Origin: Diplonema japonicum
Lineage: Eukaryota; Protista; Euglenozoa: Diplonemea
Assembly (NCBI GenBank): GCA_964019335.1
Contig: OZ025710.1
Coordinates: 186,001-250,000 of the forward strand
Direction of reading: 5' to 3'
DNA length: 64,000 nucleotides
Of the stretch, positions 1,171-62,323 are shown piece after piece; the stretch's first letter is position 1; each line of letters starts with the position of its first letter. Position numbers and translations under genes: made by a program. The notes beneath the pieces are model-generated. The model was not told where the DNA came from and ran no database searches. It saw only the letters and a list, made by a program, of their open reading frames with translations.

Positions 1171-1329
1171 TCAGTACCCGTACTGGGCGAGCAGCTTGGC
1201 CTGCTTGGGGAGCTCCTTCGACGCCTCAGACTTGGCCTCAGCCCACATCTTGTCGGTGGCCTTCTTGGACTCGAAGTACTTGGCACCACGGACCTTGCGC
1301 TCCTCCTCAAGCTTGGCGACGTCGGCCTG

Positions 1330-1364
<35 letters not shown>

Positions 1365-1901
1365 CCCACACACCTGGTGCTTCCACCCGAGCTCGTGGGA
1401 CAGACGTCCGAGCCTGCAGTACTTCCTGTTGGGGGCAAGACGGAGCACCCTAAGGGCCTGGGGGCACACAACCCTCTTCACACGCTCCATGTTCTTGGGG
1501 ACACCCTCGAAGCACACAAGGCGCTTCAAGGCGGCCCTCCCGCGCTTCTGGTGGTTGCGCTCGTTCTTAGTGATCATCCCACGGATCTGTGAGGTGGGGG
1601 GATTAGATGAGGTAAAAAAAAAAAAACATACAACACGGGTGATCATGGCCGAGGGGGCACGGTGGTGGAAGGGACCCTTCCCGGGGTTGGTGAGGGTGCG
1701 CTTCCTCAGGAAGTCAAGCATCTTCAGCTTGTTACGGATGTGGGTCCCGGAGATGTTGGTTTCCTCGCACCTCACAAGGGTCACCTTCTCGCCGTTCTGG
1801 AGCTTCTTGGCCACAATACCGCAGATACGACCCATCAAGTGTCCCTTCATGTCCACGCAGGTCGCCTTCGCCTTCTTCTCGGTGATGGTGTGCTTACCCA
1901 T
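1171..1901 (-). CDS. RPL13A: 60S ribosomal protein L13a (uL13), copy 1; introns 1587-1631 and 1327-1373
   Basis: DMKGHLMGR, GPFHHRAPS, RGRAALKRLVCFEGVP and LGRLSHELGWK motifs. Removing the two GT-AG introns gives a continuous frame ending LAQYGY*. Confidence 0.96.
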
Positions 1902-1993
1902 TTTTTTATATTTTTTTAAAGTATACAAACGATAAGTTCTGTTGAAAAACTCAATTAAGAAGGAGCAACAGCACAAAAAAGAAAAAAAAAAAA

Positions 1994-3510: not shown

Positions 3511-4171
3511 TTAGTTCCTCTTCTTAGGAACACCGTTCTGCTGCTCGGCGGGTCGTTTTCCAGACGTAATGGGGACATCTGTCACACTGTTCACAACAGA
3601 GAATGCTCCTGCTTTTACAAGGGTTTCTCTGTTGTCAGCACCGGTGAGGCAGCCATAAACGTAAGGTGTGCCTGCATTGAGGCCTTCTTCAATGTCCCTT
3701 ACGGTATCGCCCATTTTAGCGACTTGCTGGATTTTTTCAATACCGCACTGCTTCATTAACTCATATATCATGAAAGGGTAGGGCCTCCCTTGGCCAACCT
3801 CCATGGCGACGCAAGAACCGTCGATGTAGCTTCCAAATCCGAGTTTTTTAATAATATGGGATGCGATGTTCCTTGGGAAACCGGTGTCAAGACCGATCTT
3901 GATCCCGGCTTTTCGGAGCTTTGTGAAGTATTTGGTGATGCCCGGGATGGGTTTCAGAGGGCTGTCCTTGTCAAAGTACACTGCAACGAGTTCCTCTTCA
4001 AAGTCGGCGTACAGGCCGTTGATTTCCTCTTCGCCGCCTGCGTTGTTCTTTGCGACGAAGTGCGCGATCACCTCCCTTTTGTTGGCACCGTGCCATGCGT
4101 TGAACTCATCATCGTCCACCTTAAGCCCCGCCTCCTTCATCACCGCCTTCAGCGTTGTGTATACAATACCA

Positions 4172-4208
<37 letters not shown>

Positions 4209-4422
4209 ACACCTCGTCGACGGTGGTGCCCGCCATGTCGAAAACCACCAATTTCACGCCCAGTTCTGTCAACGGTGTGCAGGGCGACGGGCTCGCTGAG
4301 GCGGCGGCAGGGCTCGCCTCGATCGACAGCGGGGCCGCGACGGAACCGGAAGCAGCCGTGCTCTGCTGCTTCAAAACAATCTCCCCGTTCGGGAGAACTC
4401 TGATCTCAGTCACCGCCGACAT
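3511..4422 (-). CDS. Phosphonatase-like (PhnX-like) HAD hydrolase; intron 4174-4212
   Basis: After splicing, VVFDMAGTTVDE|GGIVY; also GLDTGF, GRPYPFMI and KMGDTVRDIEEGLNAG (HAD motifs). Confidence 0.85.
4174..4212 (-). other. 39-nt poly(A) intron GTGTGTTT(A)30G
   Basis: Interrupts the family motif GTTVDE|GG; GT and AG ends; no pyrimidine in the last ~30 nt. Confidence 0.9.
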
Positions 4423-4529
4423 TTTTTTTCTTTTTTTTTTTTCTTTACAAATAATCTCTTTTCCAAAAGATTTTTTGACGTTAACAAAAAAAAAAAAAAA
4501 AAAAAAAAAAAGAAAATATCATAAAACAC

Positions 4530-5723: not shown

Positions 5724-5758
<35 letters not shown>

Positions 5759-6739: not shown

Positions 6740-9279
6740 TTAATGCCCGCCCTTCATTAGATTAAGCGCTCGAATCTGGTGTGCAGGCAGATCTTTTCGA
6801 AGAAGCAGGACTTTTTTCGCCTCGTCTGGGTTGAGCCTCCACATGAGGGCACCACTGCTGTACGCACCGCCTGTCCAAAGGTCCTCAACTTCGGCAAGCT
6901 GGATTTTTTTTTTTTTTTGGGATTTAAGATTCTTGGCATACTCGATCAACGATGAGCAGAGCGGCGATGTGGGAGAGCCTAGTAAACTTCTCACGGATGG
7001 GTTTTTCTGTTTTGCCGGAAAAATATTGTTTCACAGCTCTGATGTCACGGTCTAGCTGTAGCCCACCGCAAACGTCATAGCTTTTCTTCATGAGGATAAC
7101 CTCCATTTGCTTCACAGTCCATCTGGGGGGAGGGTGTTTTTTCTTCTTTTTTTTTTCTTTTCACCCATACCCCACTATCTCCGCAATCAACACATTCATG
7201 TTCTCGATATTCAAAATATCCGTGTAGGGCCGCAGCATTTCCTCCCACTGTTGTATAGCGGCTCGTACCCAGGCGTCACAGATTTCATAATGGATTAGTT
7301 TTTCCTTTTTTTTTTTTTTTTTTTTGAAATAATAAAAAAAAAAAAAAGAAAAAAAAAAGTACCTCTCCAAGCACGTAGCTCAGCTCATCGAACGATTTCA
7401 GACCTTTCTCGTACATTTGCTTGGTTATCAGGGTTTTAGTCTTCCCGATGACCGATAGCAGAAGTTCGTCGAACAGCGAACCCGCCGTGAGCAGGTCTTG
7501 ACCGGATGCTTTGTACTGCTCCATCGCAGCTTCCCCTTCCGCAGCGAAGTCCTTTGGACACAACGCCATGAAAAAATCGTTTAGCTTGGCGCAGTATTCC
7601 TTGCACGTCAGACACGCGTTCATCCAGTAAAGGTTTTTCGGGGCGATCTGGTTCTCCCGCTTCAGTGTAAGCTTTTCTTTCAAGACGATGAGGAGGTTGT
7701 CTCTGATGAGGTCGGTGATAATGTTGAGGACGGACCCGATGATGGGCCCTGACCTAGTACGCACTACACGTTCTACAGTCGTGCGGAGAATGAAAAAGAT
7801 ATCATCGACGAAGGTTGTGGCAGCCTCTCCATCGCAGTGCTCTTCCTCTTGGTTCAAACCGAGAAAATTTGTCCCTTGTACAGTCACGTCCATTAAATTT
7901 TTCCACGCTTTGGGGTCGGAGAACCTTGTAGGGGACTGTGATGTCGCCGATCCCTTTGAAGTGTTACCGGGGGTGTTGCCGCTGTCGGCGGATCGAGAGG
8001 AAGTGAGTAGTACATCAAGAGCCTTTCCAAAGGCTGCTGCTAGATACTCCCGCTGAAGAGGAATGTAACATCCCAAAAGCTCGTGCAGTTTGTCCGTCAG
8101 CGCCGGTTCCCCGGTCACCCCGCGTTTCTTCTTCAAAAAATCAAAGTATAAAAAGCAGAAGTATGACAGATGGCTGATCTCCTCAAGAGTCTGGTCCATT
8201 TTTTTCGTGTCGGTGTCGTTGCCGAGGCCTTGTCCTTGATGTGTTGGGGTTGATTGAGGTGTGGGGCTCCTCGATCCAGTTAACGTGAGGTTTCTGTTCG
8301 TCAGGAAACTGTTCAGAACACTGACAGAGTGTTTCGTGCATTCCTCGTGCAATGCGTTCACCATGACGGCTACACCGGATTCCCCGAAGAATTCGGTGAT
8401 GTGTGCGTCCTCTGCTTCGATGGTGCTGACGATGTGATCGAGAACCTCGGAGACAAGAGTGAGATGAGTGGCGGTTTTTGATCCTTTTGCGATGGTGTCG
8501 AGTGTGGACTCGACGTGCAGGGTGAGCTGTGCCCCGCAGCCTTGCTGCAGCCAGCGTGAGTATTGTTCCACACCTTCTTGGGTGAGCCCGACCTTTTTGT
8601 ACAATTTGGAGAACCGGACAACACCATCGCGATCCTGCGCTGCTGCAGATTCGTTGAACTCCTTTCGAACTGCATCGCGAACTTCATCACGTTTTGCGTG
8701 TAACAGTTGCGCTGTGGCGCGTGTGCCTGGCTTTCTCACACCAACCACATCGTCGTCCTCTGAGTCGGTTTTATCGATTACTTCTTGCGTTGCAAGTTCC
8801 TCATCACTGTCTTGTTCTTCAAGAGCTGCGATGTCTTTGAGTTGATCTTCGATAATGTAATATTCAGAGATGATTTCCGCGGCAGCTTCATAGTCGCATT
8901 TTGACAGTGCGGTTGTGATGCCTTCAAGGGAGCTGCCTTGTTTTGAGACGCCTGTGGCGAGGTCTAAGGTGCTGTTTACTCTTGCTTTGAGTTTGTCGAT
9001 TTCTTTTACCCGCCGGGAGGATTGCTTTGCGATCTTGGCGGATTCTGCGATGGAGGTGGCGAGTTTTGCGGCCTTCTCCTTTGCAGAGTACAGTTGGTGG
9101 TATTTCGTGTCGCTGATCAGTTCCACCTGGAGGCCCACGTCGTCCTCGTCCGTCACCACGTCCCCCACCTCTGCCCAGATCGCATCCTGTTCTTTCGTGA
9201 CCCTTTCGATTTCCTTCAGCAGCGCAACGCATTCCTTGTTCAACGCTGAGCCTTGCGACGGGTCCGGTGTGTATGGCAT
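6740..9279 (-). CDS. COG4: Conserved oligomeric Golgi complex subunit 4; introns 7305-7362, 7123-7170, 6899-6941
   Basis: DYEAAAEII, FVDDIFFIL, SYVLGE|EKLIHYEICDAWV, GGLQLDRDIR, IREKFTRL and WRLNPDEAKKVLLLR, assembled by removing three GT-AG introns. Confidence 0.88.
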
Positions 9280-9418
9280 TTCCCCCCCCCTTTTTTTTCT
9301 TTTTGGATTTGAAATGTTAAGAAAGGAAAAAAAAAAATTTTTTTTTCTTTGGAAAGAGGCGGGAGAGAGAGAGAGAGGCTATAAACATCAAAAAAAAAAA
9401 GTAAAATAATGCTGTGTT

Positions 9419-10484
9419 TTAGTTCAAAACCCTTCCAAACTCAATAGACTTCACCGGGAGGGATTTGGATATGGAAACCTGAACGTTTTTTTTTTTTTTT
9501 TTTTTTTTTTCCCAGCGTTTTCCATACTGGTCTCCAAGTACCGAACCTCGGCCGATCCCTTGCACGCTCCTCCTTCTCCGTCGCCTCCTTAATCTCGAAG
9601 GGATCTTCTCGGTAAGGGGGGAAGGCGGCCTCGTTGTTCCCAAATAAAGCCCCGACACCGGATTTTCCTTTGTGGCTGGGCTTCCAAGGAGAGTCTTTCG
9701 GGGGCGGCGTAGTGGAGGCTACCGGCTTGCGCGGCTGGAGGGGTTGTTTCAACCGATAGACTTGCGACGCTCCGCACTGTAGGGGGAGGGTGGGATTCAA
9801 AATTTAGGGGAAAAAAAAAAAAAAAAAAAAAAATCATACATTCCCCGATTCATCGAAAAATTTTGTGTTTTTGCACGCTGATTTGAAAGGGACCTTTTCG
9901 GCCAGCATTGCACGGTCCTTCTCCCTTGCTTTTTGCTCCAGTTTTTTTGGATTGTCGAAGGGGTCACATATATACGTGCACCCTTCCCAGTCAGAGTTCG
10001 CCCCACCCAGCGAGTTTGAAAGCAATGTGCCTGGCACCCCGTAGGTACCTTTTTTGCAGGGACCTATCACAATGTTGCGCTGCTCTGGTTCTTTTTTCGG
10101 AGGGTGCTCTCCTTTCTGAATGACGGTGTATTCGGTTTCATGTCTAACCCCTTGCCCAAAACAACCGAAATACCCGCCCAAGCCACAGGACTGTTTCCCC
10201 GGTGACGGGCCTTTGAAGGGTCCGTTTCCTATAAACCTGGAGTTCTTTTCCTTGATGCTTTGTTTTTCCACCCATCCTGGGTCTTTATATTCGTCGCCCT
10301 CGCTTAAACCGTTGAAGGAGGCGTAGAGGTTCCACCCAAAGGTAGTCTGAGGGAGGTTGCCCTTCTTCCCCGAGCCCGTTACGAAGCATTTTAACCCCTC
10401 GTTCCGAGGGTCTTTTGGGGCCTTCTTATCATATTCGTCACCAATAGTTATGTAGCCTGCAGCTTCTGAGAAGAGCGAGACCAT
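9419..10484 (-). CDS. CFAP96/C4orf47-like (DUF4586) ciliary protein; introns 9777-9839 and 9479-9527
   Basis: LFSEAAGYITIGDEY, NIVIGPCKKGTYG, WKPS and FPPYREDP match my recollection of the family; the spliced frame is continuous. Confidence 0.75.
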
Positions 10485-11196
10485 CTTCCTCTCTCTCCCC
10501 CCTTTTTTTTTGTGTGTAACAAGAGAAGAAACGTGTGGGTTCTCCCTCTTACCCGACCCTTTTTTTTTTTTTTTTTTTTCGCGGAGTGACAGAAAGAAAA
10601 AAAAAGTAGTGGGTGGTGGGGGAGTGCGAGGTAAAAAAAAAAAAGAAGAAAATGGACGACGAGAGTAAAGGTGAGTAATAAAAAGAAACAAGGGAAAGCA
10701 AAAAAAAGGGGGGGGACAATAAACTATTTTTTTCTTGTGAAAGGGGACGAGAGGGGGGGGGGGGGGGGGATGATGCTCTTACTAAAGAAAGAAAAAGGGA
10801 GATGGGGAAGAAAAAAAATGAAAGAAAAAAAAAAAACCAATAATCAAATGTGTGAGCTACATATTTTTTTTTTTAAAAAAAAAAAACTTTCTTCTTTTCC
10901 TCCCCTTCCTCCAATAAAAACGAGCACAAAAAAAAGGTGTGGGGAAGGGGTGCGAAACGTGTGTGTGAAAAAAAAAAGGTCTAATCAAACAAAAAAAATC
11001 GTGGGTGTGTGGTTGGTGGGGCAAAACTAAGGGGTGTGAACGAAAAAAAAAAAAAAAAAAAAAAGTGGCAAGGGACAAAAAAAAAAAAAAAGTGGGCTGG
11101 TAGAAAAAAAAAAAAAAAAAATCTAACACTTGATATTTTTTTTTGATTTTTTTTTTTTTTTTTTTTAGAAAAAGAAAAAAAAAAATTACTCATCAT

Positions 11197-13068
11197 CTAC
11201 CTCCTCTGCCTGGGGGCGCACCTGATGATGTCGTCAACCCTTAGGATCATTTCGGCAGCCTCCACCGCGTACTCCAAAGAGGAGGACTTCGACAGGAAGG
11301 ACTCGGTAATACCCGCAGCCTGCGCGTCGAGGAAGGTCCCGTTGTTGATGTCAAGACCCTGTCGGCAAGTACCGTCGGAACGACGGTGGATCTCAGCTAA
11401 ATCGTGAGCGAACTGGGCAGGCATACCAGCCGACTCCCCGATGATAAGAGGAATCTGGACAAGAGCCTGTGCGAAGGCCTCCATGGCCTTCACCTTACCG
11501 AAGGACTTCTTTTCGGCGGTCTTGAGCTCTTCATCAGTTCGGAGGGATGTCGCGGCCTTGGAGACGGCAGCAGCCATGAGAGCCTCACTGCACCCAGCAC
11601 CGAAAACAACCCTGGAGTCCCTCACAGTCGAGGCAACAATGCACAGTGCGTCCCTCAGGGAACGGTCGGCCTCCTCCAACAGCTGAGCAGAGGAACCCCT
11701 CAGAACAATGGTGCAGGCCCTGCCGCCCTTGAGCCCGCTGAACCTGATCAGCGTGTCCTCACCGATCATGACCTCGTCGATTAGGTCGCAACCGCCCATC
11801 TTAACGCCAGTGGGGTCGTCGAACTGCGACACCACCTCACCACCCAAGGCGCTCGCCAGCCTCTCGATCCCGTCGAAATCAGCGTGTTCAATGGCCATCA
11901 TACCGGCGTTGGCGAAGAGCTCCTCCGGGTAGTTGTAGATCAGCTGCCTGTTGATGAAGCAGTTGCAGTTGAAGTTGATAATTTTCTCGACCTACAAAAA
12001 AACGGGTGTAATTTTTTTTTTCTTCTTCTTTTCTCCCTTCAATAATACCTTGGCCTTCATCTTCTCCTTCTCCGCCTTTTCTATCCCTGCAACCGTGTCG
12101 ATGTTGTCAGTCTTTAGGTTTTTTTTTTTTTTTTTTTTTTTTTTAAATACCTTCACCCTCGCTCCGAAGATCTTGATTTTGTCGGTGTCCATGGATGTGT
12201 TTGCGACAAGGATCTTGGCGTTTTCAAGCCTCTTGGGCTGGCCGATACCGATCCTTTTGTTGAGGAGGAACCCGTCTTCAAGGTAGGAGTCCTGCATGGT
12301 CCCACCGAGCTTCTTCATGACGGAGATGAGTTCGAGGTTTCGGGGGCGCTTGTTGAGGGACTTGGGGGAGTTGGGCATGTCACCGATACGGAGGACTGCG
12401 TTGACAGCGAGGTTGGCGAAATGGTCTTTGTCGATGGAGAGGACCTTTGAGGACAGGGTGGTGCTGGCAATGTCGATAAGATCCTTCCTGAAGGTCTCTG
12501 GGTCGGAGAAGTGGTTAACTGCGGAGGCTTCAAGAGCCTTCTTGGCAACCTCAGCGGCCTCCCTCCAGCCTTCGATGATGGTCTGGGGGTGCAGCTGCTC
12601 GATGAGGATCAGCTTCTCTGCCTGTCTCAGAAGCTCGCCAGCCAGAACGCACACGGTAGTGGTACCGTCACCCACCTCGTCATCCTGTGTCTTGGAGATA
12701 TCGATCAAAATTTTCGCCGCTGGGTTGTCCACCAGAATGCTTTTCAGAATCGTGGCACCGTCGTTGGTCACGTTCACGGTCGCGTTCCCAGTCCTCCCGC
12801 TGCTCTGAAGGATCTTGTCCATACCCTTCGGCCCGAGCGTTGTCTTCACAAGGTCAGACAGCTGGGTTTTTTTTTTTTTTTTTTTTGTTTTTTTTTTTTT
12901 TTTTTTTTGTCATACCGCGATCGCGCCCATGAAGTTGCTCAGACGGCACTCCTCACCCTTCATCTCCATGGATCCCGCCTGTTTTTTTTTTTTTTCTTTT
13001 TTTGTGGATATTTTTTTTTCTCATACCTTCAAAATATCTACATTCGGGTTATACCTTGCTTCTTGCAT
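11197..13068 (-). CDS. CCT2: T-complex protein 1 subunit beta; introns 12979-13026, 12862-12915, 12112-12150, 11992-12048
   Basis: [54 protein letters not shown] and [13 protein letters not shown]. Confidence 0.97.
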
Positions 13069-15106: not shown

Positions 15107-15174
<68 letters not shown>

Positions 15175-15983: not shown

Positions 15984-16015
<32 letters not shown>

Positions 16016-18314
16016 TCCCCTTAAAACCAAACCTTGGTGCGGCCCTCACGAAAGACTAATTTTGCCCCAATGGTAAGGTACTCCGGCCGATAAAGGAATT
16101 TGAAACACACACGAGCCTATGTAAAAAAAATTTTTTTTATATTAAAAAAAAAAAAAAAAAACCCTCCTCCTCCTCCCACACCTTATCCCCTGTGCGTAAC
16201 AAATCGGTGTCGAAAAGCGTAATCTTCGCAGACTGCCGAATAGTGGAACAATGGATCACGGGTTCGTACTTGGACTTGATTGTGGTGGAGTGGTAAAGAA
16301 CGATAATCTCGGCCGAGAACTCTCGGTAGGCCATGGGCGGGGCTTTCGGGGTGTATTCGAGAAGAACGTTCCCCTTTCTGACGGCAGAGCGTTTCTCTTT
16401 CTTCAAAGCGATGGCCGCATCATGCCCGGCTTCTACCTGATGAACATCCAACCCTTTCACCTGTATGCTCTTTATCTGAACAGGGCGGAACTGTCCGTTC
16501 CCGTTAGGCCCGATGAACAGGGAGTCGTTGACTTTAAAAGTACCCTTTGTGATGATCCCTCCGACAACTGTCCCGACCCCACTGACATAGAATGTCGAAT
16601 CGATGATGAGTTCTTTAGGTTCTGTTGCAAGGGATGCCCAGTCCCGTCTTATAGGGGATATGTTCAAAAAATTGATTATTTTGTTGATGTTTTCTCCGGT
16701 TACGTTCGAAACCTGGAAGACGGGGGTGATCTTGTCGTTTTTTAGGTTCTTGGCGCAGATTACAACATCCACCTCGTTCTTCACAAGATACGGTAGCTTC
16801 CTCACAGTAGGGAGCTTTAACATCTTTGTGATGGATTCCATCGTTGCTTTAATAACAGGTGCCGGGGTACTGTCCATTCTGGTCACCACGACGAAGAACG
16901 GGATGCGCAGTGCTAGACAGAGTCCTAAGTGTTCCTTCGTCATTCGTTGAATTCCGTTGTTTGCAGATATCACTATGCAAGCGTAGTCTGGAACGGATCC
17001 TGTTATACCCTGAACGGTTGTTTTGAGGTATTTTTCGTGGCCGGCGAGGTCGTACAAAGTAATGACCTTGGCAGAACGGCCGGAAAGTTCCTTGGCGGTG
17101 AGCTTGTGAACCTTTTGTGTGGTGGACGGACTGTCGCCGTCCCACGAGGCGTAGTTTACGGGATCTCCATTAGCATCAAACCCAAGGTATTGTTCACTTA
17201 CCGACGATGTTCTACCCGTGTCCTGCTCATGCTTGTGATTGAAAATTTTCGCGCGGACCAACCCACGGCCATCGTCTAGCGTCCCTCGTGTCAAAACACC
17301 TGTTAATGTTGATTTCCCGGAATCAACGTTTCCGCATATTGCAACGCGCATGTCGATGTATGTGTCTTCGCTGTCCATTCGCAGGAGGACTTCGCAACAT
17401 ACTTTCCCCTTCGGGAGTTTTTTGGTCGCGGTTACCTTCATCCCGCACCCTGTCTCGACGGCGATTTTTTTGATGACATCGAGGTTGTCTTGAAGCTGGT
17501 CTTCCTGAACACCTTCTTGCGTACCATCCCCTGCAATCCCTATCTTCATGGTGTGCTCCCGTTGATTCTCCCTCAATCGAACAAGTGTTGATTCGCAAAG
17601 CCGTGACAATCTGTCTACTGAAAGATCTAAATAGTTTGCAGGTTCAGGTTCCATAGGATGCGATGCAGGGGGTAGTGATAAAGGTGGTTCTGGTGGTGTG
17701 GAAGCAGGGCTGCTTGAAGCCGCGGAGAATGGTGTTGTTGGGTGCTGTTCGGGTGTGTGATGGAGTTGGTCGGGTTGGGGTTCTAAGTGGGTTGTTTTGG
17801 AGGATTTTTTGGGGCGTCTTTCGATTCCCTTTAGCTTTCTTGAAACGGTTGTGGCGAGGTTCCCCTGTACTATTTTGATGTCCAGTTTTCGAGTCCAATA
17901 GTTATGCTCGCCGTTCTTCCCGTTAATGGCCTGGATGGTGACCATTGGGTCTGCGATAGCCCATGTCTTTAACTCTAAAAACTCTTTTTTCCCATCGGCG
18001 CTCATTCCGTCCATAAAACAGGCCACAACCAGAAGAACAACATCATCTGTGGTGTCCATGTGCCGTTCAGGTCTGCAGCATTCCAAATAACCCCTCCCGG
18101 CCCGCTCCAAAAATTTTGTTTCCCCTACAATTTCAAAATCCTCCTTGTCCGGTGCCTCGTGGACGCCCGTTACTAGTATCTCGCTTATCCATCTCCCCAG
18201 TCCTTCTGTCTCCTCATCTATTATGGTCACGATTCGAAACCGTATTTTCTCTCGAGGGCCCGTCAATGCTTCCTCTTCTATTTTCGACGAATATTCTGCT
18301 GCTGGTCCAGCCAT
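15833..18314 (-). CDS. GTPBP1/GTPBP2-family translational GTPase with long N-terminal extension; introns 16117-16181 and 15986-16032
   Basis: GNVDSGKSTL, LDDGRG, HKHEQDTGRTSS, DLAGHEKYLKTT, LRTGDK|ARVCFKFLYRPEY and FREGRTK|GLG. Start codon uncertain. Confidence 0.9.
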
Positions 18315-24333: not shown

Positions 24334-25778
24334 TTACAGATAAAGCCCAGCTGGAGCACCTTCATCTTTTTTGTACATAACATTTTCTTTACCCTTCAAG
24401 AAGTCATCTTGACAGACCTTTTTTTTTTTTCTTTTTTTTTTCCCTCCACCAGAATACCTTCATTCTCCTATCACGTAAAGCAATCAACCCAGCTTCCGTG
24501 CACATGGCCTTAATATCAGCGCCGGACATGTCATCTTTAGAGTGGATGAATTCCTCAAGTTTTACGTCTTCCCCGAGAGACATCTTACCGGTGTGGATTT
24601 CAAAAATCATCTTTTTGGTTTTTTCATCGGGGAGAGGGAACTCAATTTTTCTGTCGATTCGCCCAGGACGGATCAGAGCAGGGTCTAAGGAGTCTATTCT
24701 GTTCGTCGCCATGATAACCTTGACCTCGCTGTTCGACTCGAAACCGTCCAACTGAGTGAGGAGCTCCAACATGGTTCTCTGGATCTCCTTCTCCCCAGAC
24801 GAAGAAGTGTCGTACCTAAAAAAATTTTTTTTAGGGAAAAAAAAAAAAAAATACCGTTTGGTTCCAATCGCATCGATCTCGTCGATGAAAACGATGGACG
24901 GGGCGCATTCCTCAGCCACTCTGAACACCTCCCTTACAAGCTTCGGGCCTTCCCCGAGGTATTTCTGAATGAACTCCGACCCCACAACCCTCAAGAACGT
25001 CGCAGATGTTTGGTTCGCAACAGCCTTGGCTAGCAACGTTTTACCCGTCCCAGGCTCCCCGTACAAAATAACACCTTTGGGAGGCTTGATACCGATGGCT
25101 TCGTAAAGCTCGGGATGGGTCAGAGGGAATTCGACTGCTTCCTTGATTTCTTGAATTTGAGATTGAAGACCACCAATATCGGCGTATGACTCCAAAGGAG
25201 CCTTGTCAACCTTCATTACATTGACAAGGGGGTCTGTTTCATGCTGGAGGATACCTACGACAGTGTGGTTTCTGTTGCCCAAGAGGAGGGAACATCCAGG
25301 GTGCAGCTCCTCCTTGTCAACGAAGGATAGGACGGGCACATAGTACTCGCCTTGTGTAGAGACGATTGCGTGATTGTCGTCAATCATCTCCTCCAGCTGG
25401 CCCACCTGGAGGGGCATTCCTCGTAGTTCCTCAACCTTAGCCAGTTCTTCTTCAATTGTGGAGGGCGGGTTGGGCCTGTCCATACAGGTTTTAATGAACT
25501 CCTCTTCCATCAGCAAGAAATCCTTCACTCTTTCCAAACGGAGCTGCCTGAGTCTGCATTTTGTCAAGGGTTTGATGGTGGGCATCCGGTGGGCTGTGTC
25601 GGGTCCCTTCTTCCGCTTCCTAGTAGAGGATTTTTTTTTTCTTTTTTTTTGTGAAAACATACTTCTTTCCCACTGTAGGTGCCGGTGGTGGTTCCCATTT
25701 CTTCTGTTCTTTTTTATTCCCTTGCCCTGCGCCCTGGCCAGCCTGCCCTCCCTGGCGCTGGCTTTGCTGGTTACCCAT
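24334..25778 (-). CDS. PSMC1: 26S proteasome regulatory ATPase Rpt2; introns 25620-25662, 24816-24854, 24418-24457
   Basis: MGNQQS N-terminus, [30 protein letters not shown] and the C-terminal GLYL* reached after splicing. Confidence 0.97.
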
Positions 25779-38174: not shown

Positions 38175-39185
38175 CTAATAGCCGAAATTGTACTGCTGAG
38201 CCATCAGCATTGAAGCATTGATACGATGGATGTCCGACTCTTGAAGGAAAAGGGTCTTATTTCGGTGTTCATCTGGAAAACAAATTGGGACAAAAAAAAA
38301 AAAGTAAAAACATACTTATTACATGGATGACACAACTCTGTTGTGCCATCCTAACTTGCAGTAGCGGATTATCTTTTTTTTTTTTTTTTTTCTTCTAAAA
38401 AAAAAATCATACCTACTATATACCGCTCCATTTGCTTGCCTTCCATGAAAATATATTGGTTGGCCAACCTGCGAATTGTGTCATAGTGCTGCCCTTCAAT
38501 CATGGCTTCCCGCACTGAGTTCGATCCAATTCGACGCCATTTGTGCTCGATTTCTTTTTTTTTTTTTTTTAAATTTTTTTCTCTTCCACACACCTTGGAT
38601 CAAAACGTAATCGGGGACATCCGGAAGGTTCCCTTTCTGATCGATGCATTGACATTTCTGGGACATGCTGTCGCTCCATAATATTTTTCCTTCGCTCAGC
38701 ATTCTCCGCCATGACAGCCGGTGTGCGAGGTGTTCTCGTTCCAATCTGTAAGCTTCTGAAATTAACAGTTTTATGAAAACTATTCCATCAGAAGCATTTC
38801 GAATTGCAGTACCCGCTCGCATCCGGCTGCAGTGGTGTTCCCAGGAGTGACATTTAGTTCGAAAATTATCGTTGCTAGATGAAACCTGGTCCCACGGAAG
38901 AGTTACTTCACTAGCACGGGGGCCTTGATTTCCCGCGTACATCGTATATTCAGGAGGTGTATACACACAACCTTGGCCTGGCTGTTGTTGTTGTTGTTGT
39001 TGTTGTTGTTGCTGTTGTTGCAATTGTTGTTGCTGTTCCTCCCTTTCTTCGTTTGTTAGTTTTTTCTCAAGCGACTGTAACTGCCGCATGGCCAAAGGCG
39101 GGGGTTCCAAAGATGTTGTGGGTGGGGACGGCGGTATTTCATGAGGAGACGTCCCACCTTTCACCTGAAGGTTGACCGCTGTCAT
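38175..39185 (-). CDS. Hypothetical polyQ-containing protein; introns 38554-38593, 38373-38412, 38273-38315
   Basis: Removing three phase-1 GT-AG introns gives one frame MTAVNLQV...VLIQEIEHKW...YIVDNPLL...VINEHRNK...QQYNFGY*. Confidence 0.75.
38983..39037. repeat. CAA/CAG microsatellite encoding polyglutamine
   Basis: (TGT)n/(TGC) run on the plus strand. Confidence 0.9.
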
Positions 39186-39431
39186 CTTTTTTCTCTCTCT
39201 CTCTTTTTTTTTTTTTTTTTTCTCTTTTTTTTTTTCCCCTTCTTCTTCTTTCCTTTTCTCTCTCTCTCTCAATTATGTTCTCTCTCTTTTTTTTTTTTTT
39301 TTTTTTTTGTTCCCAGAAAAAAAAAAACTTGTCAATTTCTCTCTTTTTTTTTTTTAATATAATCTTGTCTTCAGCATATAAAAAATTCTTTTTTTTTTGA
39401 GAGAAGGGGAGATACAATAAAAGGGGTGTGT

Positions 39432-40999: not shown

Positions 41000-41158
41000 T
41001 CAGTACCCGTACTGGGCGAGCAGCTTGGCCTGCTTGGGGAGCTCCTTCGACGCCTCAGACTTGGCCTCAGCCCACATCTTGTCGGTGGCCTTCTTGGACT
41101 CGAAGTACTTGGCACCACGGACCTTGCGCTCCTCCTCAAGCTTGGCGACGTCGGCCTG

Positions 41159-41192
<34 letters not shown>

Positions 41193-41729
41193 CCCACACA
41201 CCTGGTGCTTCCACCCGAGCTCGTGGGACAGACGTCCGAGCCTGCAGTACTTCCTGTTGGGGGCAAGACGGAGCACCCTAAGGGCCTGGGGGCACACAAC
41301 CCTCTTCACACGCTCCATGTTCTTGGGGACACCCTCGAAGCACACAAGGCGCTTCAAGGCGGCCCTCCCGCGCTTCTGGTGGTTGCGCTCGTTCTTAGTG
41401 ATCATCCCACGGATCTGTGAGGTGGGGGGATTAGATGAGGTAAAAAAAAAAAAACATACAACACGGGTGATCATGGCCGAGGGGGCACGGTGGTGGAAGG
41501 GACCCTTCCCGGGGTTGGTGAGGGTGCGCTTCCTCAGGAAGTCAAGCATCTTCAGCTTGTTACGGATGTGGGTCCCGGAGATGTTGGTTTCCTCGCACCT
41601 CACAAGGGTCACCTTCTCGCCGTTCTGGAGCTTCTTGGCCACAATACCGCAGATACGACCCATCAAGTGTCCCTTCATGTCCACGCAGGTCGCCTTCGCC
41701 TTCTTCTCGGTGATGGTGTGCTTACCCAT
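41000..41729 (-). CDS. RPL13A: 60S ribosomal protein L13a (uL13), copy 2; introns 41415-41459 and 41156-41201
   Basis: Reads identical by eye to 1171-1901 including both introns, except one A fewer in the poly(A) intron. Confidence 0.96.
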
Positions 41730-46345: not shown

Positions 46346-46390
<45 letters not shown>

Positions 46391-48039: not shown

Positions 48040-48073
<34 letters not shown>

Positions 48074-48642
48074 CGACTTCAAACCTTCTGGACGATGACT
48101 GCTGAGGTAGGTCTTTTCGACAGAGTGGCGGCACCGAGGTCACCCCTGGAGGGCACCCAGATATATTGAACCTTTTTTTTTTTTTTTTTTTTTTTTTCCC
48201 ACAAACATTTTTGCTCTCGAGAAGAAGCGGCATGTGGCTGATCACGTCCAAAGGCGAAATATCGGCAGCCAAAATGACAAGGGAGTTGGAACCAGCCTTT
48301 TCCTTGCGGACAATCTTGGTAACCTCCTTGATCCCCCTCACCATTGTCTTTCCCTTGGTGGCGTACTTAACCATAGAAAGGACCTTTTTCGTCAAGTTTT
48401 CGACGTCTGTAGGTGGGGGAATAATTTAAAAAAAAGAGAAAAAAAAATTTTTTTTGAAAACTACCATTTGAAATCGGGTGCGCGATAGGCACGCAAATTC
48501 GGACTACCTCGGAGGTTTCTGCCGGGGCGGCGGTCTCAGCTTCGGGCTCCTTAGCCTTCTTTTCCTTCTTCTCCTTCTTATCTTTCTTGGCCTTCTTGGC
48601 CACGTTGTCGTCCTTCTCCTCCCTGGCGCGCTTGGTACCCAT
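47969..48642 (-). CDS. NHP2: H/ACA snoRNP protein NHP2 (L7Ae family); introns 48407-48464, 48172-48206, 48041-48084
   Basis: PIAHPI, RGIKEVTK, LAADISPLDVISHMP and WVPSRGDLGAATLSKRPTS after splicing. Confidence 0.92.
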
Positions 48643-51894: not shown

Positions 51895-51909
51895 CCATCC
51901 CCTCCATCA

Positions 51910-53136: not shown

Positions 53137-53194
<58 letters not shown>

Positions 53195-53199
53195 ATATC

Positions 53200-56341: not shown

Positions 56342-56432
56342 TTAACAGCATCCACCCTTCTTCTTCTTCTCGGTGGTCTTATCAAGCTTCACACCACCGG
56401 GGATGAACTCACCGTCATCCTGGACCTGGGGA

Positions 56433-56476
<44 letters not shown>

Positions 56477-56769
56477 CCAAACCTTCTGTGCCTTCTTAAG
56501 CGCGTTCTTTGCCACAGCCATGAAGGCCTGTTCAACATTGAAGTTGTCCTTCGCCGATGTCTCGTAGTAAGGGATGCTCGACTGGTCATCGCCCTTCGCC
56601 TGTTTCTGCGACCACGCGATAGCAGCCTTCACAGACACACACCTCTTGTCCTCAAGATCGTTCTTGTTACCAATCAGAACAAAGTCTTTGTTCTCACCAG
56701 CCTGATGGATGAACTCCTCATGCCATGACGAAAGGTGGGCGAAGGAGTCCTGGTTCGTCAAGTCGAAAA

Positions 56770-56800
<31 letters not shown>

Positions 56801-57073
56801 CCATTCACACACCAACATGCATGCGTCGGCTCCACGGTAAAACGCAGTCCCGAGCGACTGGAACCTCTCTTGGCCTGCGGTGTCCCAGATCTGAAGCGTG
56901 ACAAGGGTGCCCTCCACCTCCAGTTCCTTGGTCAGGAAATCCGCACCGATTGTCGCCTTGTATCTGGAATCGAACCTGTTGTTCACGTACTGCCCCATGA
57001 GCGAGGACTTCCCCACACCGCTGTCACCGAGGATAATAACCTTAAGCAAAACCTTCTTGCGTCCGCCCGACAT
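56342..57073 (-). CDS. RAB7: Rab7 GTPase; introns 56771-56812 and 56426-56482
   Basis: [44 protein letters not shown]|VFD and C-terminal GGCC. Confidence 0.97.
56771..56812 (-). other. 42-nt poly(A) intron GTGTGTGAATGG(A)29G
   Basis: Splits the conserved Rab strand ACML|VFD. Confidence 0.92.
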
Positions 57074-57654: not shown

Positions 57655-57688
<34 letters not shown>

Positions 57689-58017
57689 TATATATATATA
57701 TATATAACATACCTCCCAGTCCTCGTCGACCTCGGCAGCCTCTTCCTTGTTTTTTGGCAATGGGCAGCTCCACAGAAACATTCCTTGTTTCAAATTTTCT
57801 TTTTCCATTGCTTTTTCGTACGATGCCTGCAGTCCCGATTTTGAACTCGCAAACCCTTCTCTTACGTACCAACCGGTGCTTTGATTTTGATTCACCTTTG
57901 GTGTCGAGGTTACGGCGTAAGTAGATTTCATCATCGTTTGGTACAAATACTGCGGCATTTCGGGAAGTTGGTAATCGTCGTTATTTGCTACGAGCAGTCC
58001 GTTGTTGCCGTCTGCCT

Positions 58018-58051
<34 letters not shown>

Positions 58052-58212
58052 TGTTCCAAACAGACCTGCGTCCAATGGCTCGGCTTCTTCCTCATCGTGA
58101 ACTCTTCAAAACTTTCATGCGCTTCTTTCTTGTGAAACAGCGTGTTCTGCCATGCGCCCCGGGTTCCCTTTGAAACTTGGTTGTAGGCCAACGATAGCGG
58201 GATTCGCGACAT
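57232..58212 (-). CDS. Hypothetical protein; introns 58016-58065 and 57655-57712
   Basis: Three ORF-track fragments join in frame (SHWTQ|ADGNN...EDWE|RLTEAYSSGSLGPHVES) on removal of two GT-AG A-rich introns. Confidence 0.8.
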
Positions 58213-58511: not shown

Positions 58512-61500
58512 CTAGTCATGTTCTTCAGGAAGATATTCCTCCCCGCCGACGACCGACCCACCAGCTTCACCATAATCGTCCCCATCATCACCCGGCGTCA
58601 GCACGAGATATTTATGATGCTCTTCCTCATGTTCCACAGGCACCTCAACAACTCTGTTCACATCCTCTTCCACCATCACCATCTCAACCATCTTCATAAG
58701 CTCCCCATCTGAAATTTCCGAACTCGAGTCGCTGTATCCAGGCTCCACGGTATAATAGACATGCGGCCGGCAACTGTAAGAAGAAGACAGAGGTGTTTGA
58801 ACAGAGGAATAAACAGGTTTCAACGTAGTCCGCGACAACGGTGATGAAGGGACGACCATTAAACGTTGTACTGGTGAAAAGGGCATTCCTGGTGAGAGAG
58901 GGCTGTTCGGCTCGGGGTTAGCGGTGAGCATCTCTTTGAGGTGAAGGATCTCTTGTTCTAATTTCAGCTTAGCAGCATGTTTCGTCTCAAGAAGACTCTC
59001 AAGGTACTCCGCTTCCTCATCCAGAGATTCCAACACAGCAGGGTCAAAATTCACCGATTCAGCTTTAGCCCGACTAACCACGGAAGCTATTGCCCCTGCA
59101 GTCACAACACCTGCTAGCATCGGAACTGTTACATACGCATTGTAGACTAGACGGCGTGCCTCGTCGATGTTCATGTTGACGTGAGTTGATGCTGCCGCGG
59201 TGTTGTTCTTGTTGAGCTGCAATGTGATTCGTGCGCGTTTCCACCTTTTCACACCGTCGTGTAGAGGTGAGGCTTCTCTGAATGATGAGACGCTTGATCG
59301 GGAAGATGTGCTGAATGGGCTTCCTGGAGTGTCATCGTCTGCGTTCTCAAGCGCTTCTATGGCAGCCTCTACCTCCTTCGCCCTGTTTTTCAACCTCGAC
59401 ACTGTTGCTGTTAAGGATGTTAACAGTCTTCCCGTGTCTCTGCCTAGTGCTTCGTGAACGGATGACAGGGTTGTCTCCAATGCTTTTAACTCGCTGTCTT
59501 GAACTGCGAGTACTTTGTCGCGCATTTTGTTGAACGCTTTCGGTTTGGATTTTGACGACCCTCCTGCAGATGGAGCGGGCCGCATGTTCAAAACACTGTG
59601 CCGTCGAATGAGCTCTGTGGAGTTTATCCTGCTCACCTCCGGTCCCGAGTATTTCCGATTCTCCGCATTCATGCTGTTTATTGTCAAATCCAACGGGTCT
59701 AAAGATTCTTCATCGTCTTCTGTATCATGACCAGCATACATTCTTGCCTGTCCTAGCATCTGTTGATCGACAAGGCTTGACACATAGTCGTCGATGGCGC
59801 CTCTGTTGGAGTCGCCCCAATCGGATAAATACTGCCCAGGGGTACCGTATCCAATCGCGTGGTTGAGAATGCTTCCCAGTTCGGTGAGGAATGCTGTCTG
59901 CTGTTTGGTGACAGAGGTTGTTGTGATGCCCGATTCAGACGGGCTCTGGATGGAGGGCAGCCATACCCGCTGCATTAAGAATGCGCCTATACACCGGTGA
60001 ACGTTGATCGGCGAACGCGTTCTGACCATTAGCTCCTCGTCGGTGATGTCGTGGACGCAACGCTTGATCATTGCAACGATGACCTGCAGCTCGTAAGGGA
60101 AGACAGATGTGTGTTCCGTGTTGGTGATCGCGTTGAAATAAGTCCAGCAATGGTTCAACAGCTCCGATTCACGATTGTGCTTTTCTGAGAAATTTCGTTG
60201 GAACTCTGACACAGCGTTGGTCAACGTCAACCTTGCGTACTGATCAGCTTTGCTGCCCACATATAACAAGATCAAGCGTACCCCGAATGTATCTGCTTGA
60301 AACAATGTGGAAGGGCTCTTGTCCTGACCGAAGCACGACATCAACTCGTACAGAATGCATTCGTACATCAGCTGGTGTGTCAGATCCAGGTGGGCGCACA
60401 ATGCGAGGAGTGATAGTCCAAGACGGCGGCCGATAAGCTGGTCCTTGACTTTGTGTGAGACGTCAGATGCGATGTTGAGGTTTGTGAAGGTATCGATGAG
60501 GTCGAAGACCCTGACCTTTACCACCACTAGAAGCCATTTATAAGCCGCGTTGAGATCTTGTTTGGCGACAACTGCATCGGCTTCATTGTCAAGCTGCTGT
60601 TTCGTTTTTGCTTTTGACAAAAATCTCGTTAGTTTCGACCCAGCATGAATGGCTAGGTCCATTTTGGATTTAACGTGCACCTCACGCTCGAAGCGGAAGG
60701 GAAGCCTTTCTATCCGGATGTCGAGGAATGCAGTTTCAAGGTGTTCTTGGATTTTGTGGGTTGCTTTTTCAACAGAGACACCGGACCCGCTTGAGGACTT
60801 GCAGACTCTTATGAGAAGTTCACGGTCGTAGAAGTGTTCCTTTGCCTTCTCGTCACGTAAGGCACGGAGGATACCACCGTCTTTCTTCTTCCCCCGTCGT
60901 AGGTGGAGTTGTAAGACGGATTGCGATGTTGAAAAAACAGCGGATTCCAACCGTTCTACTCTGACGAATGTTTCTAGTTTGAACTCTCTTTCTGACTCGT
61001 ATAGGATGTATATTGCAGAAGTTGTTATGAGCAAGATGTGCGACAGTTTCTCAGCCTCGTTTTTCTCGTATAGAAATTGCACGCGGAGCGAGAGTTTTAT
61101 AGTGGTGTCGCCTTTGCTGCGGAGGAGCTTTGCGATGTGTGGGTTGGGAGCAAGGTTTGCAAAATCGTCCTCTGTGTCCACCATTATGGAATCGGCTTCT
61201 AAAGCCCTTCTCAGTTTTACAGATGAGATGGCCCGTTTTGCGTACTCCACGTTCAGCAACGGCTCGGACACCACCGAGACCATGATGTCCGGAAGCTTCG
61301 GTTTTATCAAAGCATGTTGTTTTAAAAGAAAACCCAAGAAGCTGTCCTTTCTGGCAGGATCGTTGAAGGTGATAACGGAGTAAGCCCAGAGATGATTTTC
61401 ATTTGAGGATTTTACGATATCGATGGCCAGGCTGAGTTCGTCGGTCTCCGTATAGAGGACTTCTTTGATGTTTCTTAATGATATGGAAACTGGGACCATG

Positions 61501-61928
61501 GTCCCGCCAGGTGCTTGGGAGAGGTCTGGGAATGAGGTTGTGGCTACACCGTTGCGGCGCAGAGTTGTTCTGGAAGACGTGACTGGTGTGAGGATAGACA
61601 CTGTTGAGGGTGTTGCGAGATCTGCGTGTTCTGTGCTTGTTAGGTAGTATAGTTGGTTAGTGGTGATTACGACAGCCATGTCGCAGCGTCCGCAGCCCCG
61701 TACCACTGCAACGGCAGTGGAGAAGTGTACGGTTTCTCGTTTTATGTTTCGCAGGTATAGCTCGTCTTTGATGTTTTCTTTTGTTGCCTTGCCGACGGCT
61801 TCTTTTTTGATCTCCTCACCGACCTTGCCATAGTCTCCTCCGGTATTCTTCACCTTTTTGTGATGGGTGTTGAGAACCTGACTCTCTTCGGCCGATGGGA
61901 GGGCAACAATGCTTTCGAATTTCCTCAT
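58512..61928 (-). CDS. PH/TH1-like plus RasGAP-like domain protein with coiled coils
   Basis: ILLITTSAIYIL-type PH/TH1 strands; STLFQADT, FPYELQ and IGAFLMQRVWLPSIQSP resemble RasGAP blocks. Confidence 0.7.
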   Translation of the reverse strand: MRKFESIVALPSAEESQVLNTHHKKVKNTGGDYGKVGEEIKKEAVGKATKENIKDELYLRNIKRETVHFSTAVAVVRGCGRCDMAVVITTNQLYYLTSTEHADLATPSTVSILTPVTSSRTTLRRNGVATTSFPDLSQAPGGTMVPVSISLRNIKEVLYTETDELSLAIDIVKSSNENHLWAYSVITFNDPARKDSFLGFLLKQHALIKPKLPDIMVSVVSEPLLNVEYAKRAISSVKLRRALEADSIMVDTEDDFANLAPNPHIAKLLRSKGDTTIKLSLRVQFLYEKNEAEKLSHILLITTSAIYILYESEREFKLETFVRVERLESAVFSTSQSVLQLHLRRGKKKDGGILRALRDEKAKEHFYDRELLIRVCKSSSGSGVSVEKATHKIQEHLETAFLDIRIERLPFRFEREVHVKSKMDLAIHAGSKLTRFLSKAKTKQQLDNEADAVVAKQDLNAAYKWLLVVVKVRVFDLIDTFTNLNIASDVSHKVKDQLIGRRLGLSLLALCAHLDLTHQLMYECILYELMSCFGQDKSPSTLFQADTFGVRLILLYVGSKADQYARLTLTNAVSEFQRNFSEKHNRESELLNHCWTYFNAITNTEHTSVFPYELQVIVAMIKRCVHDITDEELMVRTRSPINVHRCIGAFLMQRVWLPSIQSPSESGITTTSVTKQQTAFLTELGSILNHAIGYGTPGQYLSDWGDSNRGAIDDYVSSLVDQQMLGQARMYAGHDTEDDEESLDPLDLTINSMNAENRKYSGPEVSRINSTELIRRHSVLNMRPAPSAGGSSKSKPKAFNKMRDKVLAVQDSELKALETTLSSVHEALGRDTGRLLTSLTATVSRLKNRAKEVEAAIEALENADDDTPGSPFSTSSRSSVSSFREASPLHDGVKRWKRARITLQLNKNNTAAASTHVNMNIDEARRLVYNAYVTVPMLAGVVTAGAIASVVSRAKAESVNFDPAVLESLDEEAEYLESLLETKHAAKLKLEQEILHLKEMLTANPEPNSPLSPGMPFSPVQRLMVVPSSPLSRTTLKPVYSSVQTPLSSSYSCRPHVYYTVEPGYSDSSSEISDGELMKMVEMVMVEEDVNRVVEVPVEHEEEHHKYLVLTPGDDGDDYGEAGGSVVGGEEYLPEEHD

Positions 61929-62090
61929 TTTTTTTTCATGGTTTTTTTTTTTTTTTTTTTCCCTGACGAAAAATTATGTGGAGATGGAGGGGAAAAAAAA
62001 ATTTTTTTTTTTTCGTGTAAGTGTACGGAGGCAAGAGGGGTTTTTTTTGTTAAAAAAAATCTTCTTTTTTTTTTTCTCTCTTCTTTTTTT

Positions 62091-62323
62091 TCAGGCTCCA
62101 ACAACGCTTCTGATGCCGGATAGTTTTTTCTGGTTGTCAGCCCCCAGTAGTTTTGCCGCGCTGAGTTGGTCCTGTTTTTTTATTTTTTTTATATTTTTTT
62201 TTTATTATTTGTTCGTACCGAAATTACTGTGTGCGCATGTGCCATCTCAGCGAACGAACCCTTCAAAGAATTTGCCCTGGCTTCAAATTCACAGGGCTTA
62301 AGAACTGTATGGGATCCTGGCAT
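62091..62323 (-). CDS. 61-aa microprotein candidate; intron 62172-62218
   Basis: A-tract+ATG, MPGSHTVLK...HTVIS|DQLSAAKLLG...VVGA*, with a GTACGA..(A-rich)..CAG intron. Confidence 0.55.

Follow-up and report, generated by a model that had tools for sequence, protein, structure and literature searches.

Short GT-AG introns with acceptor-side poly(A) tracts in a gene array of Diplonema japonicum

How a spliceosome finds the 3' end of an intron that carries a run of adenosines in the place of a pyrimidine tract is the question raised by a 64,000-nt stretch of the Diplonema japonicum genome (contig OZ025710.1, positions 186,001 to 250,000 of the forward strand; hereafter the window, with coordinates counted from its first letter). 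The genes of this window are interrupted by tiny GT-AG introns that are A-rich on the sense strand and that, in the verified cases, are removed from RNA. These introns are read here, with a probability of roughly 0.55, as ordinary U2-type introns that combine a strong donor, a narrow length, a G-free unstructured A spacer and use of the first AG as acceptor. The trait itself is already published for this species, and a preliminary description of the window, made from the sequence alone, which knew of no described equivalent, is thus superseded on this point. Thakur et al. (RNA 2025, PMC12621601) compare six diplonemids by sequence logos over about 10,000 introns. They report that the canonical GT-AG introns of D. 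japonicum have a median of 41 nt and a G/GTATG donor, that A is the most frequent base of the 'PPT' (polypyrimidine tract), with 'atypical poly(A) tracts', that the branch motif YTRAY stands at 13.9% and that U2AF1/2 are present; in L. lanifica and R. humris the A signal is weaker. The mechanism is not taken past 'a highly adaptable spliceosome' in that study (PMC12621601), and the trait is unmentioned in the D. papillatum genome paper (PMC10161547).

Removal of the introns from RNA

The gene models of the window derive from a small dynamic-programming gene finder that is blind to intron composition, followed by hand curation. The retained set includes 26 tiny minus-strand introns with GT-AG ends, of which 24 are distinct and two reside in a duplicated RPL13A gene (Table 1). 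Under a strict filter the gene finder makes 11 predictions in the window, of which 10 are real and none is antisense; pattern matches alone are unspecific, with 43 on the sense strand vs 29 on the antisense strand. Several further candidates lie in 5' untranslated regions (UTRs), outside coding context. The tiny introns with sense-strand A-tracts that the preliminary description had placed along this strand are confirmed, while its count of about 34 falls to 24 distinct introns plus two paralogue duplicates when support in coding context is asked for. The ten introns that it had singled out as running from A straight into the acceptor AG all have this sequence form: those at 4174, 7305, 24418, 48041, 48172 and 56771 are verified, the one at 15986 is plausible by reading frame, and those at 38373, 38554 and 57655 are unverified candidates. 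For 15986-16032, only these bounds keep the frame, and the motif reading is the analyst's own judgement.

Junctions in RNA are seen in contigs of two public runs guessed to be RNA (X1 and X2), in a comparison of RNA and DNA contigs that covered one stretch of the window, 7000-12999. An X2 contig (record 8) joins 7171 straight to 7122 (record positions 1627 to 1628) and thereby shows the exact removal of COG4 intron 7123-7170. The same record shortens the 71 genome letters of 7294-7364 to 13, so that exactly the 58 nt of the COG4 intron 7305-7362 are gone. Similarly, an X1 contig (record 5) holds 5 letters vs 68 in the genome (9777-9844), with exactly the 63 nt of the CFAP96-like intron 9777-9839 gone. 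A further joint of X1, from 11962 to 12046, was considered as splicing of the CCT2 intron 11992-12048 and is not counted, as its 26 letters mismatch the exon. X1 and X2 are about 3% off the genome, mostly by transitions, so their source is a sister strain or species in which the intron positions are conserved; their differences from the genome include a 3-nt indel (8786) and a 10-nt indel (10484).

For 4174-4212, in the gene of a phosphonatase-like HAD hydrolase, alignment to a solved structure is ambiguous and the case is settled by a transcript-derived protein. This protein (P0025), a complete open reading frame (ORF) of a Trinity transcriptome, is identical at 290 of 290 residues to the window ORF 3514-4422 minus exactly the 13 residues encoded by the intron.

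Excision had also been said to restore conserved motifs, and this is supported exon by exon for Rab7, CCT2, PSMC1 and NHP2. In Rab7, the segment 56771-56812 reads, relative to Rab7 structures, as a 14-residue insertion inside the conserved GADxxxLVFD strand. In PSMC1, the exon directly after 24418 matches human PSMC1 residues 415-440 (the last 26), and the upstream alignment stops at RRMKV. Thus, intron 24418-24457 uses the second AG of its A10-G-A12-G end and skips the AG 13 nt upstream, which would give a 27-nt intron. In NHP2, positions 2-60 of the L7Ae profile are covered by the upstream ORF, and the 29-residue exon 48085-48171, located between introns 2 and 3, matches Nhp2 residues 64-90 end to end. 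In CCT2, the ORFs that flank 11992-12048 match Cpn60_TCP1 profile positions 1-238 and 244-488, and the sole stop codon between them is intronic.

Table 1. Tiny introns of the window, followed by A-runs that end 5' UTRs (structures given 5' to 3' on the sense strand).
Coordinates (strand)	Gene or feature	Structure	Length (nt)	Support
1327..1373 (-)	RPL13A copy 1	GTGTGTGGG-A32-TCTCAG	47	excision restores reading frame between coding segments
1587..1631 (-)	RPL13A copy 1	GTATG-T13-ACCTCATCTAATCCCCCCACCTCACAG	45 (multiple of 3)	gene model and donor consensus
4174..4212 (-)	phosphonatase-like HAD hydrolase	GTGTGTTT-A30-G	39	transcript-derived protein P0025
6899..6941 (-)	COG4	GTATGCCAAGAATCTTAAATCCC-A15-TCCAG	43	frame restored by excision
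7123..7170 (-)	COG4	A-rich, then CACCCTCCCCCCAG	48	exact RNA-run junction
7305..7362 (-)	COG4	GTAC-T10-C-T14-ATTATTTC-A20-G	58	RNA-run contig short by 58 nt
9777..9839 (-)	CFAP96-like	GTATGA-T23-...CCCTCCCCCTACAG	63	RNA-run contig short by 63 nt
11992..12048 (-)	CCT2	A/G-rich, A10, then TTACACCCGTTTTTTTGTAG	57	stop codon between two profile-matching ORFs
12112..12150 (-)	CCT2	GTATTT-A26-CCTAAAG	39	13-residue insertion vs human CCT2
12862..12915 (-)	CCT2, near N-terminus	GTATGAC-A21-C-A20-CCCAG	54 (multiple of 3)	gene model only
15986..16032 (-)	EF-Tu-family GTPase (HBS1/GTPBP-like)	GTTTGGTTTTAAGGGGATATTT-A24-G	47	frame into last exon
24418..24457 (-)	PSMC1 (Rpt2), last intron	GTATTCTGGTGGAGGG-A10-G-A12-G	40	exon match to human PSMC1
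24816..24854 (-)	PSMC1, U-rich type	GTA-T15-CCCT-A8-T7-AG	39	13-residue insertion vs human PSMC1
25620..25662 (-)	PSMC1, 5' intron	GTATGTTTTCAC-A9-G-A10-TCCTCTACTAG	43	gene model, donor consensus and frame only
38373..38412 (-)	candidate	GTATGA-T10-AGAAG-A18-G	40	pattern only; flanking ORF 38499-39272 without homologue
38554..38593 (-)	candidate	GTGTGTGGAAGAG-A7-TTT-A16-G	40	pattern only; adjoining ORF without homologue
41156..41201 (-)	RPL13A copy 2	as 1327-1373 except A31		gene model
41415..41459 (-)	RPL13A copy 2	identical to 1587-1631		gene model
48041..48084 (-)	NHP2, intron 3	GTTTGAAGTCGAATTT-A27-G	44	exon-wise Nhp2 match
48172..48206 (-)	NHP2, intron 2	GTTTGTGGG-A25-G	35 (shortest)	exon-wise Nhp2 match
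48407..48464 (-)	NHP2, intron 1	U-rich, CCCCCACCTACAG 3' end	58	excision restores frame
56426..56482 (-)	Rab7, C-terminal	GTTTGG-A42-CTTCCCCAG	57	gene model; sits in hypervariable tail
56771..56812 (-)	Rab7	GTGTGTGAATGG-A29-G	42	14-residue insertion in conserved strand
57655..57712 (-)	candidate, unnamed gene	GTATGT-(TA)n-A30-G	58	pattern and frame only
58016..58065 (-)	candidate, same gene as 57655	GTCTGTTTGGAACAC-A31-CCAG	50	pattern and frame only
62172..62218 (-)	candidate	GTACGAACAAATAAT-A10-TAT-A8-T-A7-CAG	47	pattern only
15108-15174	A-run ending 5' UTR, before ATG 15106
5724-5757	A-run ending 5' UTR
46348-46386	A-run ending 5' UTR

Composition, polarity and length

All 26 introns have GT-AG termini and measure 35-63 nt (mean 47, median 45.5), with a base composition of 57% A, 24% T, 11% G and 9% C. 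The donor follows GT[A/G/T]T[G/T] in 23 of the 26, with GTATG the commonest form, usually behind an exonic AG. On the acceptor side, G is seen 0-1 times per position among the 26 introns from -22 through -3, and A is found in 14-23 of them at each position from -22 to -6. Position -3 is A in 11 introns, C in 10 and T in 3, such that AAG acceptors are common. An earlier estimate of a three-quarters share of A-tracts in the introns exceeds what is observed: A-runs of at least 6 nt account for only 46% of intron bases, and a long acceptor-side A-run is present in 16 of 24 introns.

The usual 3' signals of U2-type introns are sparse. The YTRAY branch motif occurs in 1 of 24 introns and CTAA/TTAA in 9 of 24, so that the branch-point consensus (YTRAY/YNYURAY, 15-40 nt upstream of the acceptor) is not a feature of the set; nor, overall, is a polypyrimidine tract. 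Thus, the absence of both signals, as initially proposed, is true of many introns but does not extend to 8 of the 24, which have a conventional C/U-rich tract and a CAG/TAG end (e.g., 1587, 7123, 9777, 24816 and 48407). The intron 1587..1631, for example, has a U-run behind the donor, a C-rich 3' end and a CTAAT motif. Such ordinary 3' ends are found inside the same genes as the A-run introns. The tiny introns are no uniform class: about two thirds are of the A-run type and the rest have ordinary C/U-rich ends.

The homopolymers within the introns are polar. An A-run of at least 10 nt ends within 10 nt of the acceptor in 16 of 24 introns, compared to no intron with an equivalent T-run; against the window-wide sense-strand background of 136 A-runs to 108 T-runs, this bias has a p of about 1e-4. 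The T-runs of at least 10 nt in introns are five in number, each beginning no more than 8 nt from the donor. The tracts range from 10 to 42 nt, and homopolymer length is anticorrelated with the length of the rest of the intron (r = -0.61), while total intron length is much less variable than permuted (9 of 20000 permutations). The A-tract of the first RPL13A intron counts 32 nt in one paralogue and 31 nt in its counterpart. Upstream of each acceptor, AG is absent for 13 nt or more (median about 39 nt).

The predicted fold of pure A-tract introns is 0 kcal/mol. Introns with both a U-run and an A-run form weak A-U hairpins only, with z-scores of -0.5 to -1.6 that are not significant vs shuffles, and a model of end pairing or hairpins is rejected on these fold predictions. 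No significant excess of G at exon position +1 follows the AAG acceptors (p = 0.42). U12-type motifs (ATATCC/GTATCC donor, TCCTTAAC branch) are absent from all 26 introns, and U12-type small nuclear RNAs (snRNAs) are lacking in published diplonemid genomes (PMC10161547, PMC12621601).

Several wider searches were set aside. A search for introns by ORF breaks returns thousands of spurious GT..AG pairs. The gene finder, when applied to 20 other 10-kb loci, gives too few predictions and too many false ones, with flat 3' composition; thus, no genome-wide share of A-tract introns is derived. Sorting homopolymers by flanking coding potential fails because antisense ORFs score as coding too. A genome count of GTDTG-N(0-14)-A18-G gives 475 matches vs 255 for the reversed control, a number that is not used as simple repeats were skipped.

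Splicing machinery and the choice of acceptor

Among the splicing factors for which a check of loss or divergence had been suggested, U2 snRNA, SF1 and U2AF65 are present. U2 snRNA is encoded by at least 7 full-length genes (139-141 bits), whose first 66 nt, with the canonical GUAGUA box, hardly differ from the Rfam consensus. An SF1/BBP orthologue has helix-hairpin and KH domains, with human SF1 as the best solved match; it was recovered through its KH domain, as an SF1-HH Pfam search of the genome was blank. A U2AF65 orthologue on contig 19 has RRM1, RRM2 and UHM domains, and its orthologues are annotated as U2AF2 by other sources. RRM1 of this protein keeps the aromatic RNP residues, whereas RRM2 is without them (KLVMSGF, KACCVFEF and variants). 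The same RRM2 substitutions occur in all diplonemid U2AF65 orthologues retrieved (P0001-P0008, aligned with plant U2AF65), including those of R. humris and Hemistasia. The divergence of RRM2 was considered as a cause of A-tract use and rejected as unspecific, since the substitutions are shared with species reported to have C-rich tracts. The RRM1 and UHM domains of the diplonemid orthologues also carry large insertions. Given the intact GUAGUA box, the presence of SF1 and U2AF65 and the C/U-rich ends in the same genes, the proposal that this lineage picks its 3' splice sites in another way is not borne out. As a side observation, one U2 snRNA gene (locus L002, G000:C12:799470-802662, 1501-1693) is followed about 780 nt downstream on the same strand by a gene for the signal recognition particle (SRP) RNA (2468-2772); the U2 gene of D. 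papillatum, by contrast, has the genes for 5S and spliced-leader (SL) RNA as its linked neighbours (PMC10161547).

The U2AF65 gene itself (locus L007, G000:C19:431548-435201), with its exon structure read against the transcript-derived protein P0001, includes two introns of interest. One is 1.43 kb in length (about 131-1560), is 17% A and ends in GAAACGAAC-A22-CAG; the A22 is the only long A/T homopolymer of this intron and lies at -25 to -4 of the acceptor. The other is a 39-nt intron (2596-2633) of the form GTGTGTT-G12-A5-TTA-T8-CAG. Thus, G-runs can also act as filler.

In the favoured explanation, the 3' half of U2-dependent introns would have been simplified to a state in which 3' sequence information is minimal. 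The introns would be recognized by intron definition over their whole short length, from a yeast-like donor (AG followed by GUAUG, GUGUG or GUUUG) and narrow length limits of about 35-63 nt. One of the many adenosines in the stretch, which is A-rich, G-free and unstructured, may serve as branch nucleophile without a fixed branch sequence, and the acceptor would be the first AG past the AG-free stretch at a permissible distance. Scanning for the first AG is a known rule and could explain acceptors that follow an AG-free stretch. The A-run is proposed to be a homopolymer grown by replication slippage, because the RPL13A paralogue tracts differ by one A and the genome is full of runs, and to serve as a length-filling G-free spacer, because tract length compensates the rest of the intron. 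U-runs would be kept off the acceptor side because a U-run followed by AG is the presumed trans-splice signal, and would be tolerated only beside the donor.

Several points weigh against this explanation. The use of any A as branch nucleophile is an assumption, and the canonical GUAGUA box of U2 is left with no obvious pairing partner in the A-tract introns. The argument on cis and trans acceptors draws on composition only, and the sample is one window. In addition, the A22 of the 1.43-kb U2AF65 intron looks like a positive signal and not like length filler.

This last point leads to the alternative that the A-tract truly takes over from the polypyrimidine tract, as a positive 3' signal bound by a dedicated factor that recruits U2. 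The factor could be either a poly(A)-binding protein of the nucleus or a U2AF65 that has changed its specificity, and its binding could mark cis acceptors as distinct from the U-rich SL acceptors. The 16 A-runs vs 0 T-runs beside acceptors, the common AAG acceptors, the placement of A22 at the extreme 3' end of an otherwise A-poor long intron and the loss of aromatic RNP residues from RRM2, with RRM1 retaining them, are in keeping with such a signal, as is the conservation of A that is termed 'significant' by Thakur et al. (PMC12621601). By contrast, the RRM2 changes do not track the A-tract trait, occurring also in diplonemids reported to have C-rich tracts or non-canonical introns; about a third of the window introns, often in the same gene, end C/U-rich; and the tracts, 10 to 42 nt in length, offset the remainder of the intron in the way expected of a spacer. 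The binding factor, moreover, remains hypothetical. A positive signal of this kind is thus possible, at odds well short of even. Its most far-reaching form, in which the Diplonema poly(A) run is a bona fide 3' signal for a dedicated protein that stands in at cis-introns for U2AF65 as well as for the polypyrimidine tract, thereby separating cis from SL acceptors, is doubtful, with A22 exactly at the acceptor of the A-poor 1.43-kb intron as its strongest hint.

Two other alternatives start from what the segments would encode if left in the mRNA, as 11 of the 26 introns are multiples of 3, stop-free and read through as K-runs. The A-run may act as a fail-safe against intron retention, in which a retained copy is read as poly-lysine, a role that is compatible with the spacer explanation. 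In other eukaryotes, poly(A)-coded lysine tracts stall ribosomes and trigger decay, and the unspliced ORFs of the window stay open and would, therefore, be invisible to nonsense-mediated surveillance. This role is nevertheless improbable: 11 of 26 is no different from the expected one third, and the placement of the run at the 3' end and the occurrence of the same runs in 5' UTRs are left unexplained. That the segments are instead poly-lysine coding insertions or homopolymer assembly artefacts, and not introns, is scarcely tenable. While many segments are in frame and stop-free, and DNA-run contigs end or are masked at long homopolymers (tract lengths rest on the assembly), several segments shift the frame or hold stops, homologues are without them, and the RNA-run contigs and the same-species transcript protein miss exactly these segments. 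DNA-run contigs from two studies (X3 and X7) also retain 7123-7170 and 11992-12048 with zero differences. This reading is refuted for the verified introns, whereas the segments at 38373, 38554, 57655, 58016 and 62172 may still be of this kind.

Among known systems, budding yeast chooses the first AG downstream of the branch point, can dispense with the pyrimidine tract and has a rigid UACUAAC branch sequence. The window introns share with it a GUAUG-type donor, an acceptor set by position and an AG-free zone before the acceptor, but are without the rigid branch sequence even though the U2 GUAGUA box is intact. The spliced-leader trans-splice acceptors of Euglenozoa (pyrimidine tract and AG) belong to the same organism and the same spliceosome as the window introns; unlike them, the cis-intron acceptors of the window never adjoin a U-run of at least 10 nt. 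The introns described by Thakur et al. (PMC12621601) agree with those of the window in the GT-AG termini, the G/GTATG donor, the A-dominated acceptor side, the rarity of YTRAY and the presence of U2-type snRNAs and U2AF, with a median of about 41 nt vs 45.5 nt in the window. Absent from that account are the runs straight into AAG, the U-5'/A-3' polarity, the length compensation and the A22 that ends a long intron. Human short introns with truncated pyrimidine tracts are spliced with the help of SPF45/RBM17 in place of U2AF (Fukumura et al. 2021, PMC8363638). Similarly to the window introns, they are about 50 nt in length, have no functional pyrimidine tract or room for one and are spliced by the U2-type spliceosome; by contrast, they are a minority in human and are not poly(A). 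On this resemblance, the SPF45-using introns may be the nearest mechanistic precedent. The non-conventional introns of euglenids and hemistasiid diplonemids have no GT-AG and show extensive end pairing (PMC12621601, PMC6221363). They are of the same phylum, are short and depart from textbook signals, as do the introns of the window, yet the latter are GT-AG throughout and have pure A-tract folds of 0 kcal/mol, which places them outside this group.

A purine homopolymer in the place of the pyrimidine tract shows how little 3' sequence the U2-type spliceosome needs in short introns. This organism, in addition, trans-splices every mRNA and, thus, provides a natural system for how cis and trans acceptors stay separate, as well as for the role of U2AF65 and SF1 when their usual binding sequences are absent. 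To the published logos, the window adds concrete RNA-verified examples, such as an A30 straight into AG and an AG skipped 13 nt upstream of the used acceptor, together with the U-run-5'/A-run-3' pattern and the compensation between homopolymer and remainder. It also carries a warning for annotation, as many in-frame, stop-free introns are read through as false poly-lysine insertions.

Gene array, spliced-leader sites and homopolymers

Nearly all long ORFs of the window are on the minus strand and form a gene array of ordinary eukaryotic housekeeping genes. The products include: (i) an L7Ae-family protein, RPL13A (twice), a phosphonatase-like HAD hydrolase, a BCKDH-kinase-like protein and COG4, (ii) a CFAP96-like protein, CCT2, an EF-Tu-family GTPase, PSMC1/Rpt2, a ferric reductase and a carnitine acyltransferase, and (iii) NHP2, riboflavin kinase, COX15, Rab7, a RasGAP-like protein and an Arf-like GTPase. 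The two RPL13A copies (1140-1997 and 41000-41870, minus strand) are 40 kb apart and have the same two introns.

The assembly of 62.5 Mb in 132 contigs represents an intron-rich genome. The 3' end of a diplonemid/kinetoplastid-type spliced leader, TTTCTGTACTTTATTG followed by GT, has 254 matches in the genome vs 0 for the reversed control; the weight of this result rests on the control count. The 254 copies are dispersed over the genome, with no single tandem array (e.g., locus L004, 1478-1517), and could represent genes for SL RNA, retro-copies headed by the SL, or a mixture of the two. The closest proteins come from diplonemid transcriptomes, among them orthologues from Rhynchopus humris (label Rhum_), Sulcionema specki (Sspe_) and Hemistasia (Hpha_) that show 41-67% identity. 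Unlabelled Trinity transcriptome entries match proteins of the window or genome at 96-100% identity, so that a public transcriptome exists for this same species, whereas the 54% identity of R. humris rules that species out. The SL 3' end, the intron-rich one-strand gene array and the nearest proteins place the organism of the window among the diplonemids, in the Diplonema group.

Sense-strand A-runs are also usual directly before ATGs, reaching A67 before the ATG at 15106, and sense-strand T-runs are located 60-200 nt upstream of ATGs. The latter sites are presumably spliced-leader acceptors, a reading based on composition. A or T homopolymers of at least 8 nt number 380 in the window and are spread over intergenic DNA, UTRs and introns. 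Those of at least 12 nt occur at 22 per 10 kb, vs a mean of about 12 per 10 kb at 20 other 10-kb loci; the window is rich in homopolymer runs and not unique.

The segment 34500-39500 has the lowest GC of the window (0.38), and its coding status is doubtful; the ORF 38499-39272 has zero homologues among 5.8 billion proteins. Short low-complexity motifs at 9282-9304, 10716-10773, 12011-12037 and 12978-12982 reach 20-40x the depth of their neighbours in DNA runs. These over-deep motifs (9282-12982) give many false joints among themselves and are, therefore, dispersed micro-repeats at gene boundaries.

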